Shown here piece by piece: positions 25,706 to 34,700 of a stretch of 64,000 nucleotides of DNA. A program made the position numbers and the translations under genes. A model generated the notes under the pieces. The model saw only the letters and a program-made list of their open reading frames with translations. It did no database searches and was not told the DNA's origin. Origin of the DNA: Macrostomum lignano (lineage: Eukaryota); NCBI GenBank assembly GCA_002269645.1, contig NIVC01003629.1, positions 1 through 64,000 of the forward strand, read 5' to 3'. Position 1 is the stretch's first letter. Each line of letters begins with the position of its first letter.

Positions 25706-28700
25706 CTACAATCAGCGCGAATCTTTGTTCATTAATTTTGCCTAAAACTGAAAACATCGATTGAAAAAACGACACAAATTAACCAACACCAGGATCTTAA
25801 ACCGAAAAGTAAATTGAAGAAAATGTGCAAAAATGACAAAGGGGGTGTTTTTTTTTGTTTTCACTGAAACGATAAAGGTGATTGAAATGGATTCTTGATT
25901 AAAATTTTTATTAAATCTGGCTGTCTTAACCACAGATACTTAAAATAAGTTAAATAACTAGATGGGCCACTCAGCACATTTGCGTGTAAACTACTATCAG
26001 TTCAGTAGTAAGTTAAACAGAAGCATTTTAATGTATTTTTAAAGCTCAATTTATTGGCTCTTACCCCCCCCCCCAGCTTAAACCCTCCAACCGCGCCTTT
26101 CCAAATTACCCCCCCCCCCTGCCCCGCCATCCAAATTTTATTGCCTTTCTCGGAATTCCAGCCCAAAAGCTGTTATATGTATGTACATTTCAGTGGACTG
26201 GCTAATGTACATTATTGCTGAACCAATTAGCAAGTTGTTTACGCCTGTAAGCTTGGGGTTCTAAACTTATCAAAGTCATTTAAGCTGCCTTTATTTTTAT
26301 AAAATAGCTTATGTATTCTTCTTTGCTACTGAACTGAAAGTAGAAAGCTGCTTTACTAAGCATATGTGCCTGAGTGGGCCATCTAGTTATTTTAGTATCT
26401 GTGGTATTAACTGTCTTGAATGCTCAACGATTTGATGCAACAGTGAGCATACCTTTGGCGGATCTGTCTGTTGCGGGACTGTGAACTCTGCTTCTGTACT
26501 TGGTGAATTGTAGCTGAATTTAACTGCAGTCGCTTGATCAACTTCGTCTCGGTTTTGAACAACTTCTAATGACTTTTCTTCGGCTTTGGATTGTCCAGAA
26601 AACTGTAACTCATCAGTTTCGTCTTCTGTTGATGAATGGGCGGCGGCTGCGGCGGTTGTTGCAGAGTCTGCTGGTCTTCCAGTAGAAGATGCCATCGCAA
26701 TTCGAGGCTGTAAAGAATTGAACTGAGTGTTTTAATGTCTAAAAAGTTGAATATCCGCTGTCAATGTCACTTGTTTCAATTAAGGTTAGCGTTAAAGGGT
26801 TAGGGCTAGGGCTAGGACCTGGGCTAGAGCTACGGCTACGGCTATCGTTTGGGCTAGGGTTTTGGCTAGGGCTAGTACTAGGGATTAGGCTAGGGCTAGG
26901 GTCAAGTCTTCATTGTTTCATTGATTTATCACACGAAGGGATACCAATTACCAACATACGACTACCCCAATTTCAAGGGCGCTTCAATGATGCGCATCTC
27001 CCAGTTAACTTGGCCAAAACCAAAATTGAACTTTGCGGCAAGCCATCTATGCACTCATGAAGTACCTGAGACACTTACCCCAACTGTTCGGTACTTCCAG
27101 CACGGATCGATGTAGAAACTTCTCGCGTTAACAACGAGTCGAGTGTTTGGTCTTGACGTTGCCTGCAAAGATTCTGCTTCTGCTGGTGTAGGCGAAAACT
27201 TTTGTTCAGGAGATGATTGTTTTGCTGTACTTCGTTGCAGCTGGGTGATTGCGGCCGCGACAAGAGCGCGCCCGTCTGTCTCAGGCAACTCCTGAATCCA
27301 GCGAAGCTCGGGCACTCTGCTCAAAAGTTCGGTCGCTTCAACAACAGCACGTGAGTCGCGCGTCTGTAATGTATGCGCGTTGGTTGCCTTCACTTACATG
27401 ATTCGATGCAAATTGTCATCTAACAAGTAGACTTACGGACAGCGTTGCATCATCATCTTCACCAGTACCAAACTTTACGCTGGTCTTCATGCTCTGCAAG
27501 CTGCCGTACACAGCAGCCGCCAGCCCTGACCGCTCGTCTGGAGGCAACTCCTGAATCCAGTGAAGCTTTGGGACCGAACTTAGCAGCTGCGTGGCCTCGA
27601 ACACGACTTGCATATCGGTTGGCTGCAGTATTGGGAAATTCAAACGGTAAAGTCAAAAACAAGCAGATTCAGGTGTCTTAAATAGCAGATGCCGTAAATC
27701 AAGAAGACAACCCACCCACAGCAGTCATGCAAGGACCACTGTAGTATAACAGGACGTAAAGCTCCAAGACCGTGTAATTTTTGGAGGCTAGTTTCCTGGA
27801 AAAAATACACTGCAGAGAAAGAAGAATCATTTATTGCATTTGATCTGGGGATCATTCTTCTAAATGTTTTTCATTGTTTCTACTGTTTTATTTTTATTTC
27901 ATAAGCCCAATTATAATTATGAAACTTTCACTACACAGCTGTGCATTATGCTAAAATGAAATAACGGTAATCTTCTCTGCACTGCCCAAGATCAATTAAA
28001 TAATTGATTATGTAATAAAAATGTCTTTTCTTATATCTGACGGTGTATTTTTCTAAGAAATTGGCCAAAAAAATTACACGATCCTTGAGTTTTACGTCCT
28101 GTTATGCCACAGTGGTCCTTGCAGTGATTCCCATTTCGCTAACTCCAGGGCACACGCAAACTAAGATGGGGTGTAAAGCAGCTTACAACACACTAGTCAG
28201 GCGTACTGTTATAGAGCCACTCAATCCATCTGCAGACACTTAGGCAGTGTAAAAAACAAAATCAAACGAACCGCAAGTTCAAGTCCTTGGTGAGTTGCGT
28301 CACCAGTTTGAAATTTTTTCACACTGTCGCAGACTGCAGCAGCAAGCCGAGCCCTGTCAGCCTGGGGCACCTCCTGAATCCAACGCAGCTCAGGAACTTT
28401 GCTCAGCTGCTCCGTAGCTTCGATAAAAGTTTCAAAGTGAGGCGACTGAAAAAATATAACAAAAAAGTTTTTTAAAATCTCATCTTTTCTATTGTTTGCC
28501 GCAATGCATAAACCTACCAAACCACTCCCGCTTCCATAGCTCTGCAGGCTGTCGCACACAGCTGCTGCCAGTCGCGCCCGCTCTGCCTGAGGAACCTCCT
28601 GGATCCACTGCAGTTCCGGAACTCTGCTCAGAAGCTGCGTCGCCTCGAGCACCACCTCCGGATGTGCGGCCGCCAGCTGCTGGCTGGCTCTGAGCTGCTG

Positions 28701-31700: not shown

Positions 31701-34700
31701 GCATTCTAATGTATTCGATGGTGTGTTAACAAACCGCCTTACCGAGATCTCAGAAACCGCTGCCAGTCTCGCTCGATCTGCCAAAGGAACCTCCTGTATC
31801 CACTGCAGCTCCGGAACTCTGCTCAGAATCTGCGTCGCCTCGAACGCCACATCTGGGTGTGCAGCTGCGATCTTCTGGCTGGCTCTGAGCTGCTGCAGCA
31901 AGTCGCACATGGCCTCTGCCAGCAGCTGCTTGTCGGACTGGCTCAGGTCATTAAGCCACTGCAGCTGAGACGACTCGCCAAGACTCTGAAGCGCTCGCTG
32001 AAGCATTTCTGTGTTGGCGGCCTGTAACGCCTTTGGATATTTTAGAAGGGTTTTCACACAGCCCACTCGTACATCCCAAATGGCATTTGTTTCTATGCTA
32101 CGATAAGCCTGCATCAGAAAAGAATTTGAACCCCTACATTTTGATTCGCAGCTGCTGCCGAATACTTGGCCCTGAGCTGTGGATCCTTGATCAGCTGCTG
32201 CATCTTGTTGCTCAGAGCAGCAGTCAGCTCGACCTGCTCAGACTGAGACAGACTCCTCAGCCACTGAAGCTCAGGAACTTCGCCCAACACTCTGGCTGCT
32301 TCCTGAAGCTTCTCTCGATCTTCAGCCTGTAAACGGAACAAATTTATTCTTGGTTCTTCTCATCGTCCAATTTACTTAATGCTGTGTTATCTAACTAATT
32401 ACCGAGATCTCAGAAGCCGCAGTCCTGAAGCTCTGCAGGCTGTCGCACATAGCCGCTGCCAGTCTCGATCGCTCTTCCGGAGGAACCTCCTGGATCCACT
32501 GCAGCTCCGGAACTCTGCTCAGAAGCTGCGTCGCCTCGAGAACCACCTCCGGATGTGCAGCCGCCAGCTGCTGGCTGGCTCTGAGCTGCTGCAGCAAGTC
32601 GCACATGGCTTCTGCCAGCAGCTGCTTGTCGAACTGTCTCAGGTCGTTAAGCCACTGCATCTGTGACGACTCGCCGATAATCTGAAGCGCTTGCTGAAGC
32701 AGCTCAGATTCTTCGGCCTAAAATATCCATATTGAAACACTTTTCGATTTCTACCGTTACTTTATTAAAAATGCCACATATATGATCTTTATTGTGGTCC
32801 TTGTACGAGCGTAGGTTGCACGCGGCGTAAAACAGCAACCAGAACCTTTACTCAAAAATATGAAAGCTCACCCCTCGAGCTGCAGCTGCTGCTGAATATT
32901 TTGCCCTGAGCTGTGGATCCTTGATCAGCTGCTGCATCTTGTTGCTCAGAGCAGTAGTCAGCTCGACCTGCTCAGACTGAGACAGACTCCTCAGCCACTG
33001 AAGTTCGGGAACGTCACTCAGTACTCGCGTTGCTTTCTGGAGCTTCTCCCGATCTTCAGCCTGTAAACGGAACGTACTCATTCTTACTTCTTCTCATCCT
33101 CCAATTTATTAAATACTGTGTCATGCAATTAACTTATTTACCCAGGTCTCAAAAGCCGCAGTCCTGAAGCTCTGCAGGCTGTCGCACAAAGCCGCTGCTA
33201 GTCGCGCTCGATCTGCCTGAGGAACCTCCTGGATCCACTGCAGCTCCGGAACTGTGCTCAGAAGCTGCGTCGCCTCGAGCACCACCTCCGGATGTGCGGC
33301 CGCCAGCTGCTGGCTGACTCTGAGCTGCTGCAACGAGTCGCACATGGCTTCAGCCAGCAGCTGCTTGTCGAACTGGCTCAGGTCGTTAAGCCACTGCAGC
33401 TGAGACGACTCGCCGATAGTCTGAAGAGCTTGCTGAAGAAGCTCAGATTCTTCTGCCTGAAGTAGTAATTTTAACAGTGCTTTAAAGCAACGAAGCCTGA
33501 TAAAAATGGTTTTCTCGTGATACAAGTATGAACAAAGTTTACATGCGCTTACGTAAAACCCTAGGCCGAGGCAATTACTCAAGAATATAAAAGCTCACCT
33601 CTCGTGCTGCAGCTGCTGCCGAATACTTAGCCCTGGGCTGTGGATCCTTGATCAGCTGCTGCATCTTGTTGCCCAGAGCAGCAGCCAGCTCAACCTGCTC
33701 AGACTGAGACAGAGTGCTCAGCCACTGAAGCTCGGGAACGTATCTCAACACTCGCGCTGCTTCCTGAAGCTTTTCTCGATCTTCGGCCTTAAGGCAAGTC
33801 GAATGTTGAATGAGAATTGCTTAAGCTCATTTACCATACATTAATGTATTCAATGGTGTGTTAACAAACCGCCTTACCGAGATGTCAGAAGCCGCAGTCC
33901 TGAAGCTCTGCAGGCTGTCGCACACAGCCGCTGCCAGTCTCGTCCGCTCCGCCGGAGGAACCTCCTGGATCCACTGAAGCTCCGGAATTCGACTAAATAA
34001 CTGCGTTGCTTCAAGCACTGTCTGCTGCTCATCTGTTGTCTACAGGGTCAGATAATTTTATATATAGTGTGAGCAACCTGGATTCTTTTTTACAAGACTT
34101 CAAACCCAACCAATACCTACACTTGCTTCGCCGAAATCTGTACTCCTGAGATCGCCGCTGTTTTTCAACTGCTGCAAATTGTCGCAGACATTGGCCGTCA
34201 AAGTGACTCTTTGGGCTTCTGGCATTTCTTGAAGCCAGTGCAGCTCGGGAAGACTGCTGAGCAGTTCCGTGGCTTCAAGAATCTGCTTTCGCTCTGTGTC
34301 CTGTGGGTCCAAAAGTAAGAAGAGCGATATTATATCTTACAATATCGTAGTATAAGAAACGCACCCCCTGTATACTTACATTGATTGGCTTGCTTCTCAC
34401 ACTCGGTCGCTGTTTTTTCAATGCCTGCAGCCTGTCACAGACTGTCTCAACCAACAATTTAGACTCATCTTGAGGTAGCTTCGCTAGCCAACGAAGTTTA
34501 GGTATTCTGCTTAGAGCGTGAGTTGCCTGTTGCAATAATTGCGGATCGCGAGGCTGAAATTACCAAAAATATTGACCGTTTTTCGGTATGATATTTTTAC
34601 TCATTAACCTATAAATTTAATTAGTTGTTTTTTTGCTTTTTGCTTGCTGCATTTGGGGTGCTGGGCTTGATCGGTTGACCAATAAAACTGAATAGATAGA

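Follow-up and report, generated by a model that had tools for sequence, protein, structure and literature searches.

A 27-copy orphan repeat, predicted to be helical, in a probable ninein orthologue of the flatworm Macrostomum lignano

As a conserved protein, ninein anchors microtubules and serves as an adaptor for dynein; vertebrate NIN and NINL as well as Drosophila Bsg25D share an N-terminal EF-hand region, a long coiled coil and a C-terminal LYxENAQLxKALxVTEQRQK segment. Tandem all-helical modules with a conserved core tryptophan are best known from the spectrin repeats, which form the rods of spectrin, dystrophin and nesprin and act as spacers in large cytoskeletal linkers. Hierarchical super-repeats are found in titin (Ig/Fn3 domains) and nebulin (a 35-residue repeat), where tandem exon duplication and symmetric exon phases permit length variation; both genes are differentially spliced, and clusters of similar exons of which a transcript takes a subset are known from Dscam. 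Lineage-specific repeat expansions are not rare in large coiled-coil proteins. For mammalian ninein, the central part has been described as a regulated in-frame cassette exon of 2,121 nt which alters centrosome binding (PMC6429586). The locus analysed here lies in a stretch of 64,000 nt from the flatworm Macrostomum lignano (GenBank assembly GCA_002269645.1, contig NIVC01003629.1, positions 1 to 64,000, referred to below as the window). A gene on its minus strand appears to share the three ninein features named above and carries, between two coiled-coil blocks, 20 exons encoding 27 copies of a short tryptophan-containing module. In this it differs from mammalian ninein, in which the central exon is single and not a repeat array, and to which no homology of the module was found.

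With a probability of roughly 0.6, the gene is read here as the M. lignano orthologue of ninein, with the array exons as consecutive internal coding exons. The module would be an orphan helical repeat, with no detectable relative outside this species, which was multiplied by exon duplication, has been retained as coding sequence by purifying selection and most likely serves as a structural spacer rod. What would be new is a ninein with a lineage-specific repeat domain made by exon duplication. By a rough estimate, orphan helical repeat of recent origin would then make up about 40% of the flatworm protein. This would offer a clean example of a new domain arising and expanding inside an old gene, and a naturally occurring length variant of the protein in a flatworm which can be made transgenic and which possesses both centrosomes and multiciliated cells.

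The array was found to occupy positions 27079-34553 of the minus strand. Pairing of AG acceptors with GT donors in frame yielded 20 exons, every one bounded by both signals, with a length divisible by three and no stop codon, and together they encode 1,549 aa in 27 modules. Seven A exons alternate with seven two-module B exons, and this block is flanked on either side by three diverged single-module exons (S1-S3 before it, S4-S6 after it). All A and B exons are of phase 0-0. The introns are mostly of 72-154 nt, with exceptions of 411 and 649 nt, and only three donor sites (those of A3, B7 and S4) are of the weaker kind. The exons and their two neighbours are as follows, in the order of transcription.

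35262..35561, minus strand: last ninein coiled-coil exon before the array, ending in GEDSHLQ in phase 0, donor GTAAAT
34380..34553, minus strand: S1, diverged single-module exon, 174 nt (module profile E 7e-23)
34121..34300, minus strand: S2, diverged single-module exon, 180 nt (module profile), also present in the database protein A0A1I8I9H7
33878..34039, minus strand: S3, single module of the B-C type, 162 nt (module profile), also present in A0A1I8I9H7
33599..33787, minus strand: A1, 189 nt, a single module with a further short helix (splice sites, open frame, as for the A and B exons below except where stated)
33142..33456, minus strand: B1, 315 nt, two modules
32872..33060, minus strand: A2, 189 nt
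32403..32717, minus strand: B2, 315 nt
32138..32326, minus strand: A3, 189 nt, weaker donor GTAGGG
31743..32021, minus strand: B3, 279 nt, in-frame 36-nt deletion in the second module (splice sites, module alignment)
31463..31651, minus strand: A4, 189 nt
31014..31328, minus strand: B4, 315 nt, donor GTAACT
30737..30925, minus strand: A5, 189 nt
30011..30325, minus strand: B5, 315 nt, preceded by the 411-nt intron, the only long one within the A/B block
29739..29927, minus strand: A6, 189 nt, conserved Trp replaced by Gly (splice sites, module alignment)
29279..29593, minus strand: B6, 315 nt
28981..29169, minus strand: A7, 189 nt
28518..28826, minus strand: B7, 309 nt, differing 3' end, weaker donor GTAGGT
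28272..28445, minus strand: S4, single-module exon, 174 nt, weaker donor GTTCGT (module profile)
27437..27622, minus strand: S5, single-module exon, 186 nt (module profile)
27079..27363, minus strand: S6, 285 nt, final module followed by a tail without repeats, its 3' end less certain than those of the other exons (module profile)
26453..26707, minus strand: exon directly following the array, phase 0 at its start, which reads CAG/CCT CGA (PRIAMASS...DPPK)

A regular-expression and open-frame scan confined the Trp-containing modules to about 27.2-34.55 kb of the window. The same extent was returned by a profile hidden Markov model (HMM) built from the alignment of the 27 modules, which gave exactly 27 matches when run against all six reading frames of the window, each with an E value of 1e-17 to 1e-29 and each lying on the minus strand within 27202-34550; nothing elsewhere scored better than about E 3. 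With a period of about 730 bp, beyond the 500-bp maximum of the program, the array is overlooked by Tandem Repeats Finder. A preliminary description of this DNA, made from the letters alone, had proposed 20 open phase-0 exons with canonical splice sites, seven A exons of 189 nt alternating with seven B exons of mostly 315 nt, and an insertion of about 1,550 aa in about 27 modules. The exon reconstruction and the profile count bear this out, on the minus strand and at the positions given there, place the in-frame 36-nt deletion that it had noted in one B copy in B3, and agree that no copy contains a stop codon.

The nature of the host gene is indicated by both of its ends. The exon at 38888-39556 (minus strand) matches Pfam EF-hand_6, EF-hand_7 and EF-hand_1 above their cut-offs, and coiled-coil-like exons lie on either side of the array (38306 to 35262 and 25705 to 13040). 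The assembled N-terminus is collinear with that of human ninein (BLASTP E 4e-28, residues 4-344 against 13-390), and similarity of the last exon to the human C-terminal region runs through the LYxENAQLxKALxVTEQRQK segment (E 9e-22). In both comparisons the human reference was not a database sequence, so that the alignments give a strong indication of ninein but do not amount to an identification from a database record; they point the same way as the earlier assignment of the host to ninein. In a word-indexed protein search the C-terminal exon found a single match, a 72-aa Logan fragment with the ninein motif (E 3.7e-9), and no modules were present on the contig of that fragment. The EF-hand exon gave no matches in the same type of search, and the N-terminus compared with PDB sequences returned calmodulin-type EF-hand matches or noise only. 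Literature searches on Macrostomum or planarian ninein yielded nothing specific. Between the N-terminal exons lies a 265-aa open frame (40428-41222, minus strand) with runs of Ala, Pro, Gln and Gly (poly-Q, poly-G) and no Pfam match, which is at most a candidate ninein exon.

Since the flanking exons upstream and downstream are both of phase 0, the reading frame continues through the array, and the earlier statement that every exon is of phase 0 extends to these two junctions. A connection between the array and ninein exons is also seen in an existing gene model. A profile search of 1.84 billion representative proteins (a library which includes UniRef entries) yielded one true match to the module, UniRef100_A0A1I8I9H7, a 452-aa protein of Macrostomum lignano (E 7.7e-83). 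This protein joins ninein coiled-coil exons to S2, S3, one A4-like and one A7-like exon. Its identity with the exons of the window is 100% at 37081-36755, 97% at 36178-36089 and 100% at 35561-35421, and its residues 180-226 match the exon at 35262..35561 at 100%; it comes from the same locus or a near-identical allele. The model shows that an independent pipeline, working on another assembly, linked array exons to ninein exons. It carries the automatic name 'PLU-1 domain-containing protein', for which current Pfam gives no match, and it is annotated neither as ninein nor as a repeat protein; the gene is present in existing protein databases only as a mis-named fragment. Exact-product look-ups with A0A1I8I9H7 and three open reading frames (ORFs) of the window added no further contigs.

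These observations bear on the proposal that the array is a transcription unit of its own, lying within a ninein intron and forming no part of ninein, which is regarded as highly improbable. The link between the array exons and ninein is a predicted one, and the adjoining introns are large and filled with repeats, as such a transcript would allow. However, the exons share the strand of ninein, S1 begins at an acceptor without an ATG, S6 ends at the consensus donor GTAAGT, the frame is unbroken between two phase-0 flanks, and the independently made A0A1I8I9H7 connects ninein exons to S2 and S3.

The module itself comprises 50-63 residues with the consensus xxxxE.LQEATQ.LS.VPELQWL..L.Q.E...LAAA.CDSLQQL. 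In the 27-module alignment A11, L21, W23, L35 and Q44 are conserved across all module types, together with a frequent Cys-Asp pair. The positions kept in all 27 modules are nearly all of the hydrophobic core, the polar Q44 being the single exception, and this fits the expectation for a folding core. Two copies depart from the pattern: A6 has lost the otherwise nearly invariant Trp (PDLQGL), and the 36-nt deletion has removed the helix segment with CDSLQ from the second module of B3 (31743-31856). Both look degraded, which may reflect an early erosion of individual copies.

The preliminary description had called the module unfamiliar, and had named a match to a well-described Pfam repeat already described from ninein orthologues as a result that would speak against it. 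No curated Pfam domain or repeat family reached its cut-off, the best matches scoring 15-24 bits; a phmmer search of PDB sequences and a word-indexed protein search with the A+B unit gave no matches; and in the profile search mentioned above no ninein orthologue matched the module. The description of the repeat as lineage-specific is in keeping with that search, which found a Macrostomum protein only, one among 1.84 billion.

Three further profile matches were rejected. The next-best (E 1.3e-8) is a protein of 1590 aa for which hhalign gave a probability of 2% and which covers only half of the module; another is a PPR protein; and the last covers only module positions 10-21, inside the tandem repeats of that protein itself. 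The 1590-aa protein consists of about 20 tandem 35-residue repeats (LSPEQRxYLFEAMKNELKDLIK) with ankyrin-like sequence at its C-terminus and has no convincing Pfam family (Cauli_AT is nominally above the whole-protein cut-off, without a significant individual stretch). Candidate SxIP, LIR and LC8-type motifs in the array were dropped after inspection by eye, as the matches were partial and lay in a helical acidic context.

AlphaFold2 predicted an all-helical structure both for one module, with the 27-sequence alignment (predicted local distance difference test, pLDDT, of 83), and for two A+B units of 336 aa (pLDDT 75.9, predicted template modelling score 0.61). The same pattern was predicted in every module, namely a helix of 13-15 residues, an 8-residue helix with PELQW(L/I) and a long helix of 18-27 residues, with one more short helix where the module is of the A type. 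A Foldseek comparison with PDB structures gave no significant match (best E values of 0.5, with the 336-aa model as query, and 5.4, with the single module). Each module would fold as a helix, a short Trp-bearing helix and a long helix, its hydrophobic core being built from the Leu, Ala, Trp, Leu and Cys positions that are conserved, and the modules in series would form a segmented all-helical rod. This rod would have the N-terminal EF-hand head and the first coiled coil on one side and the long coiled coil of the C-terminal part on the other, and would most likely act as a structural spacer lengthening the ninein dimer at centrioles or basal bodies, as spectrin repeats lengthen cytoskeletal linkers. 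The likeness to spectrin repeats does not extend to the module as such: these have about 106 residues in three long helices, against 50-63 residues with a short middle helix here, and the spectrin repeat (Pfam PF00435) was not matched at E <= 1, nor was there any significant structural match.

The distribution of conserved positions also bears on a different function, in which the array is a multivalent docking platform, each module or A+B unit binding one copy of a partner (e.g. a microtubule-anchoring or appendage protein), and expansion raises valency rather than length. The 27 near-regular copies would suit such a role; the A, B-N and B-C types stay distinct in all seven units, which suggests type-specific surfaces, and the constraint described below covers surface as well as core positions. 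Against this, the conservation common to all modules falls almost wholly in the core (A11, L21, W23 and L35, with Q44 as the polar exception), no known peptide or ligand motif was recognised, and a partner is not known. A docking array is considered unlikely on this balance, and the spacer rod is retained as the preferred function.

As regards the origin of the array, introns are homologous between some units (87% identity between those labelled iAB2 and iAB7, and 84% between iAB1 and iAB6), and therefore whole exon-intron units have been duplicated in the genome. The relationships among copies deduced from introns and from exons disagree, pointing to gene conversion or unequal exchange at a later stage. 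The second module of B is the type that S3-S6 resemble; this type is probably ancestral, with the A and B-N types derived. The array has grown by tandem duplication of genomic exon-intron units, the older single-module S-type exons coming first and a three-module A+B unit of about 730 bp being amplified seven times thereafter, with some later exchange between copies.

The copies have been kept under constraint. The ratio of nonsynonymous to synonymous substitution rates (dN/dS, Nei-Gojobori) has a mean of 0.29 for the A exons and 0.33 for the B exons, and differences from the consensus at the first, second and third codon positions number 28, 14 and 55 for A and 17, 16 and 27 for B. Had the 12 full-length exons reached their present divergence by substitution at random, 7.1 stop codons would be expected; none was seen, an outcome obtained in none of 5000 simulations. 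From the dN/dS values and the absent stops it follows that the array is real coding sequence under constraint and not an open minisatellite, and the purifying selection proposed in the preliminary description is supported by these values and by the third-position bias.

The same figures weigh on the suggestion that the array is a non-functional by-product, either a recent genomic tandem repeat which is open by chance or a copy number inflated by assembly error. The window is extremely rich in minisatellites with long spurious open frames, and the older assembly seemingly holds a collapsed version, both of which would be compatible with such an origin. Nevertheless, the copies differ from each other by 5-16% of nucleotides and therefore are not assembly duplicates; the length differences among A and B exons are exclusively in frame; and introns diverge much faster than exons, homologous introns averaging about 60% identity (range 46-87%) with insertions and deletions against 84-95% between exon copies. 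Together with the third-position bias, the low dN/dS and the lack of stops, this makes a by-product very unlikely.

Since every exon and both flanks are of phase 0, copy number (through unequal crossing-over) and exon skipping can vary without breaking the frame. The resemblance to titin and nebulin lies in this exon architecture and in the hierarchy of repeats, represented here by the three-module A+B unit in seven copies; their folds are unrelated to that of the module. Tandem homologous exons of equal length and phase, by which exon clusters are recognised, are indeed present (189 nt in 7 of 7 A exons and 315 nt in 5 of 7 B exons), and it could be supposed that the array is a cassette or mutually exclusive cluster from which each mRNA takes a subset, possibly a single unit, so that the 27-module protein is rare or never made. 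The similarity and symmetric 0-0 phase of the exons, the regulated 2,121-nt cassette in the centre of mammalian ninein (PMC6429586) and the few array exons in A0A1I8I9H7, the sole gene model at hand, all lend themselves to this idea. It is however doubtful: divisibility by three does not force exclusivity, introns of 72-154 nt are of sufficient length to let neighbouring exons be spliced together, and constraint and usable splice sites are present in all copies. The shortness of A0A1I8I9H7, which is without S1, any B exon and S4-S6, appears better explained by a collapsed older assembly than by the use of exon subsets.

A more far-reaching form of the preferred reading would take the module to have been born in the Macrostomum lineage and its 27 copies to be a ruler, tunable by copy number and splicing, which determines how far ninein extends at the appendages of centrioles or basal bodies. 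We regard this as quite improbable at present; if true, it would represent the recent, traceable birth of a structural domain in a conserved centrosomal protein.

Several points weigh against the reading of a ninein orthologue with a 27-module spacer rod. That a single mRNA contains all 20 exons is an assumption, and the ninein reference was not a database sequence. A0A1I8I9H7 is flawed, and the support it gives to the junctions is weak because it contains one frameshifted piece, skips S1, has collapsed the A copies and reads into an intron. The five two-unit AlphaFold2 models disagree (mean pLDDT 38-76) and the alignments given to AlphaFold2 comprise paralogous copies only, and for these reasons the packing between modules, and hence the term 'rod', is not established. 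With A6 lacking its Trp and B3 half a module, some copies may be eroding, and gene conversion could add to the similarity among exons. Finally, the present results are compatible with a binding array as well as with a spacer.

The introns of the ninein gene and the rest of the window are unusually rich in tandem repeats. A 62-nt minisatellite of 8 copies (34651-35153, 92% matches) occupies the whole intron that precedes S1 and yields long spurious open frames on the minus strand. Further short-unit tandem repeats were found at 5000-10500, 15800-17000, 22000-23400, 41750-42640, 44250-44850, 53150-54100 and 60280-61590; several of these are within ninein introns and are open in several frames, and they can mislead ORF scans.

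Upstream of ninein lies a neighbouring minus-strand gene with a PARP catalytic domain exon (50392-50790, Pfam PF00644, E 2.6e-12), to which two stretches at 48864-49436 and 51626-52192 probably belong as further exons, although neither has a Pfam match. On the plus strand, open frames at 59812-62014, flanking a large tandem repeat, resemble by eye a DHH/prune-type phosphoesterase (VVMGNEACDLDSAVCALSLAY...), with no Pfam match at E <= 0.001. A retrotransposon pol remnant was detected at 2433-3469 (plus strand) through Pfam RT_RNaseH, Integrase_H2C2 and rve (integrase core), and the open frames flanking it at 1442-2490 and 3403-3951 resemble gag and an integrase C-terminus.

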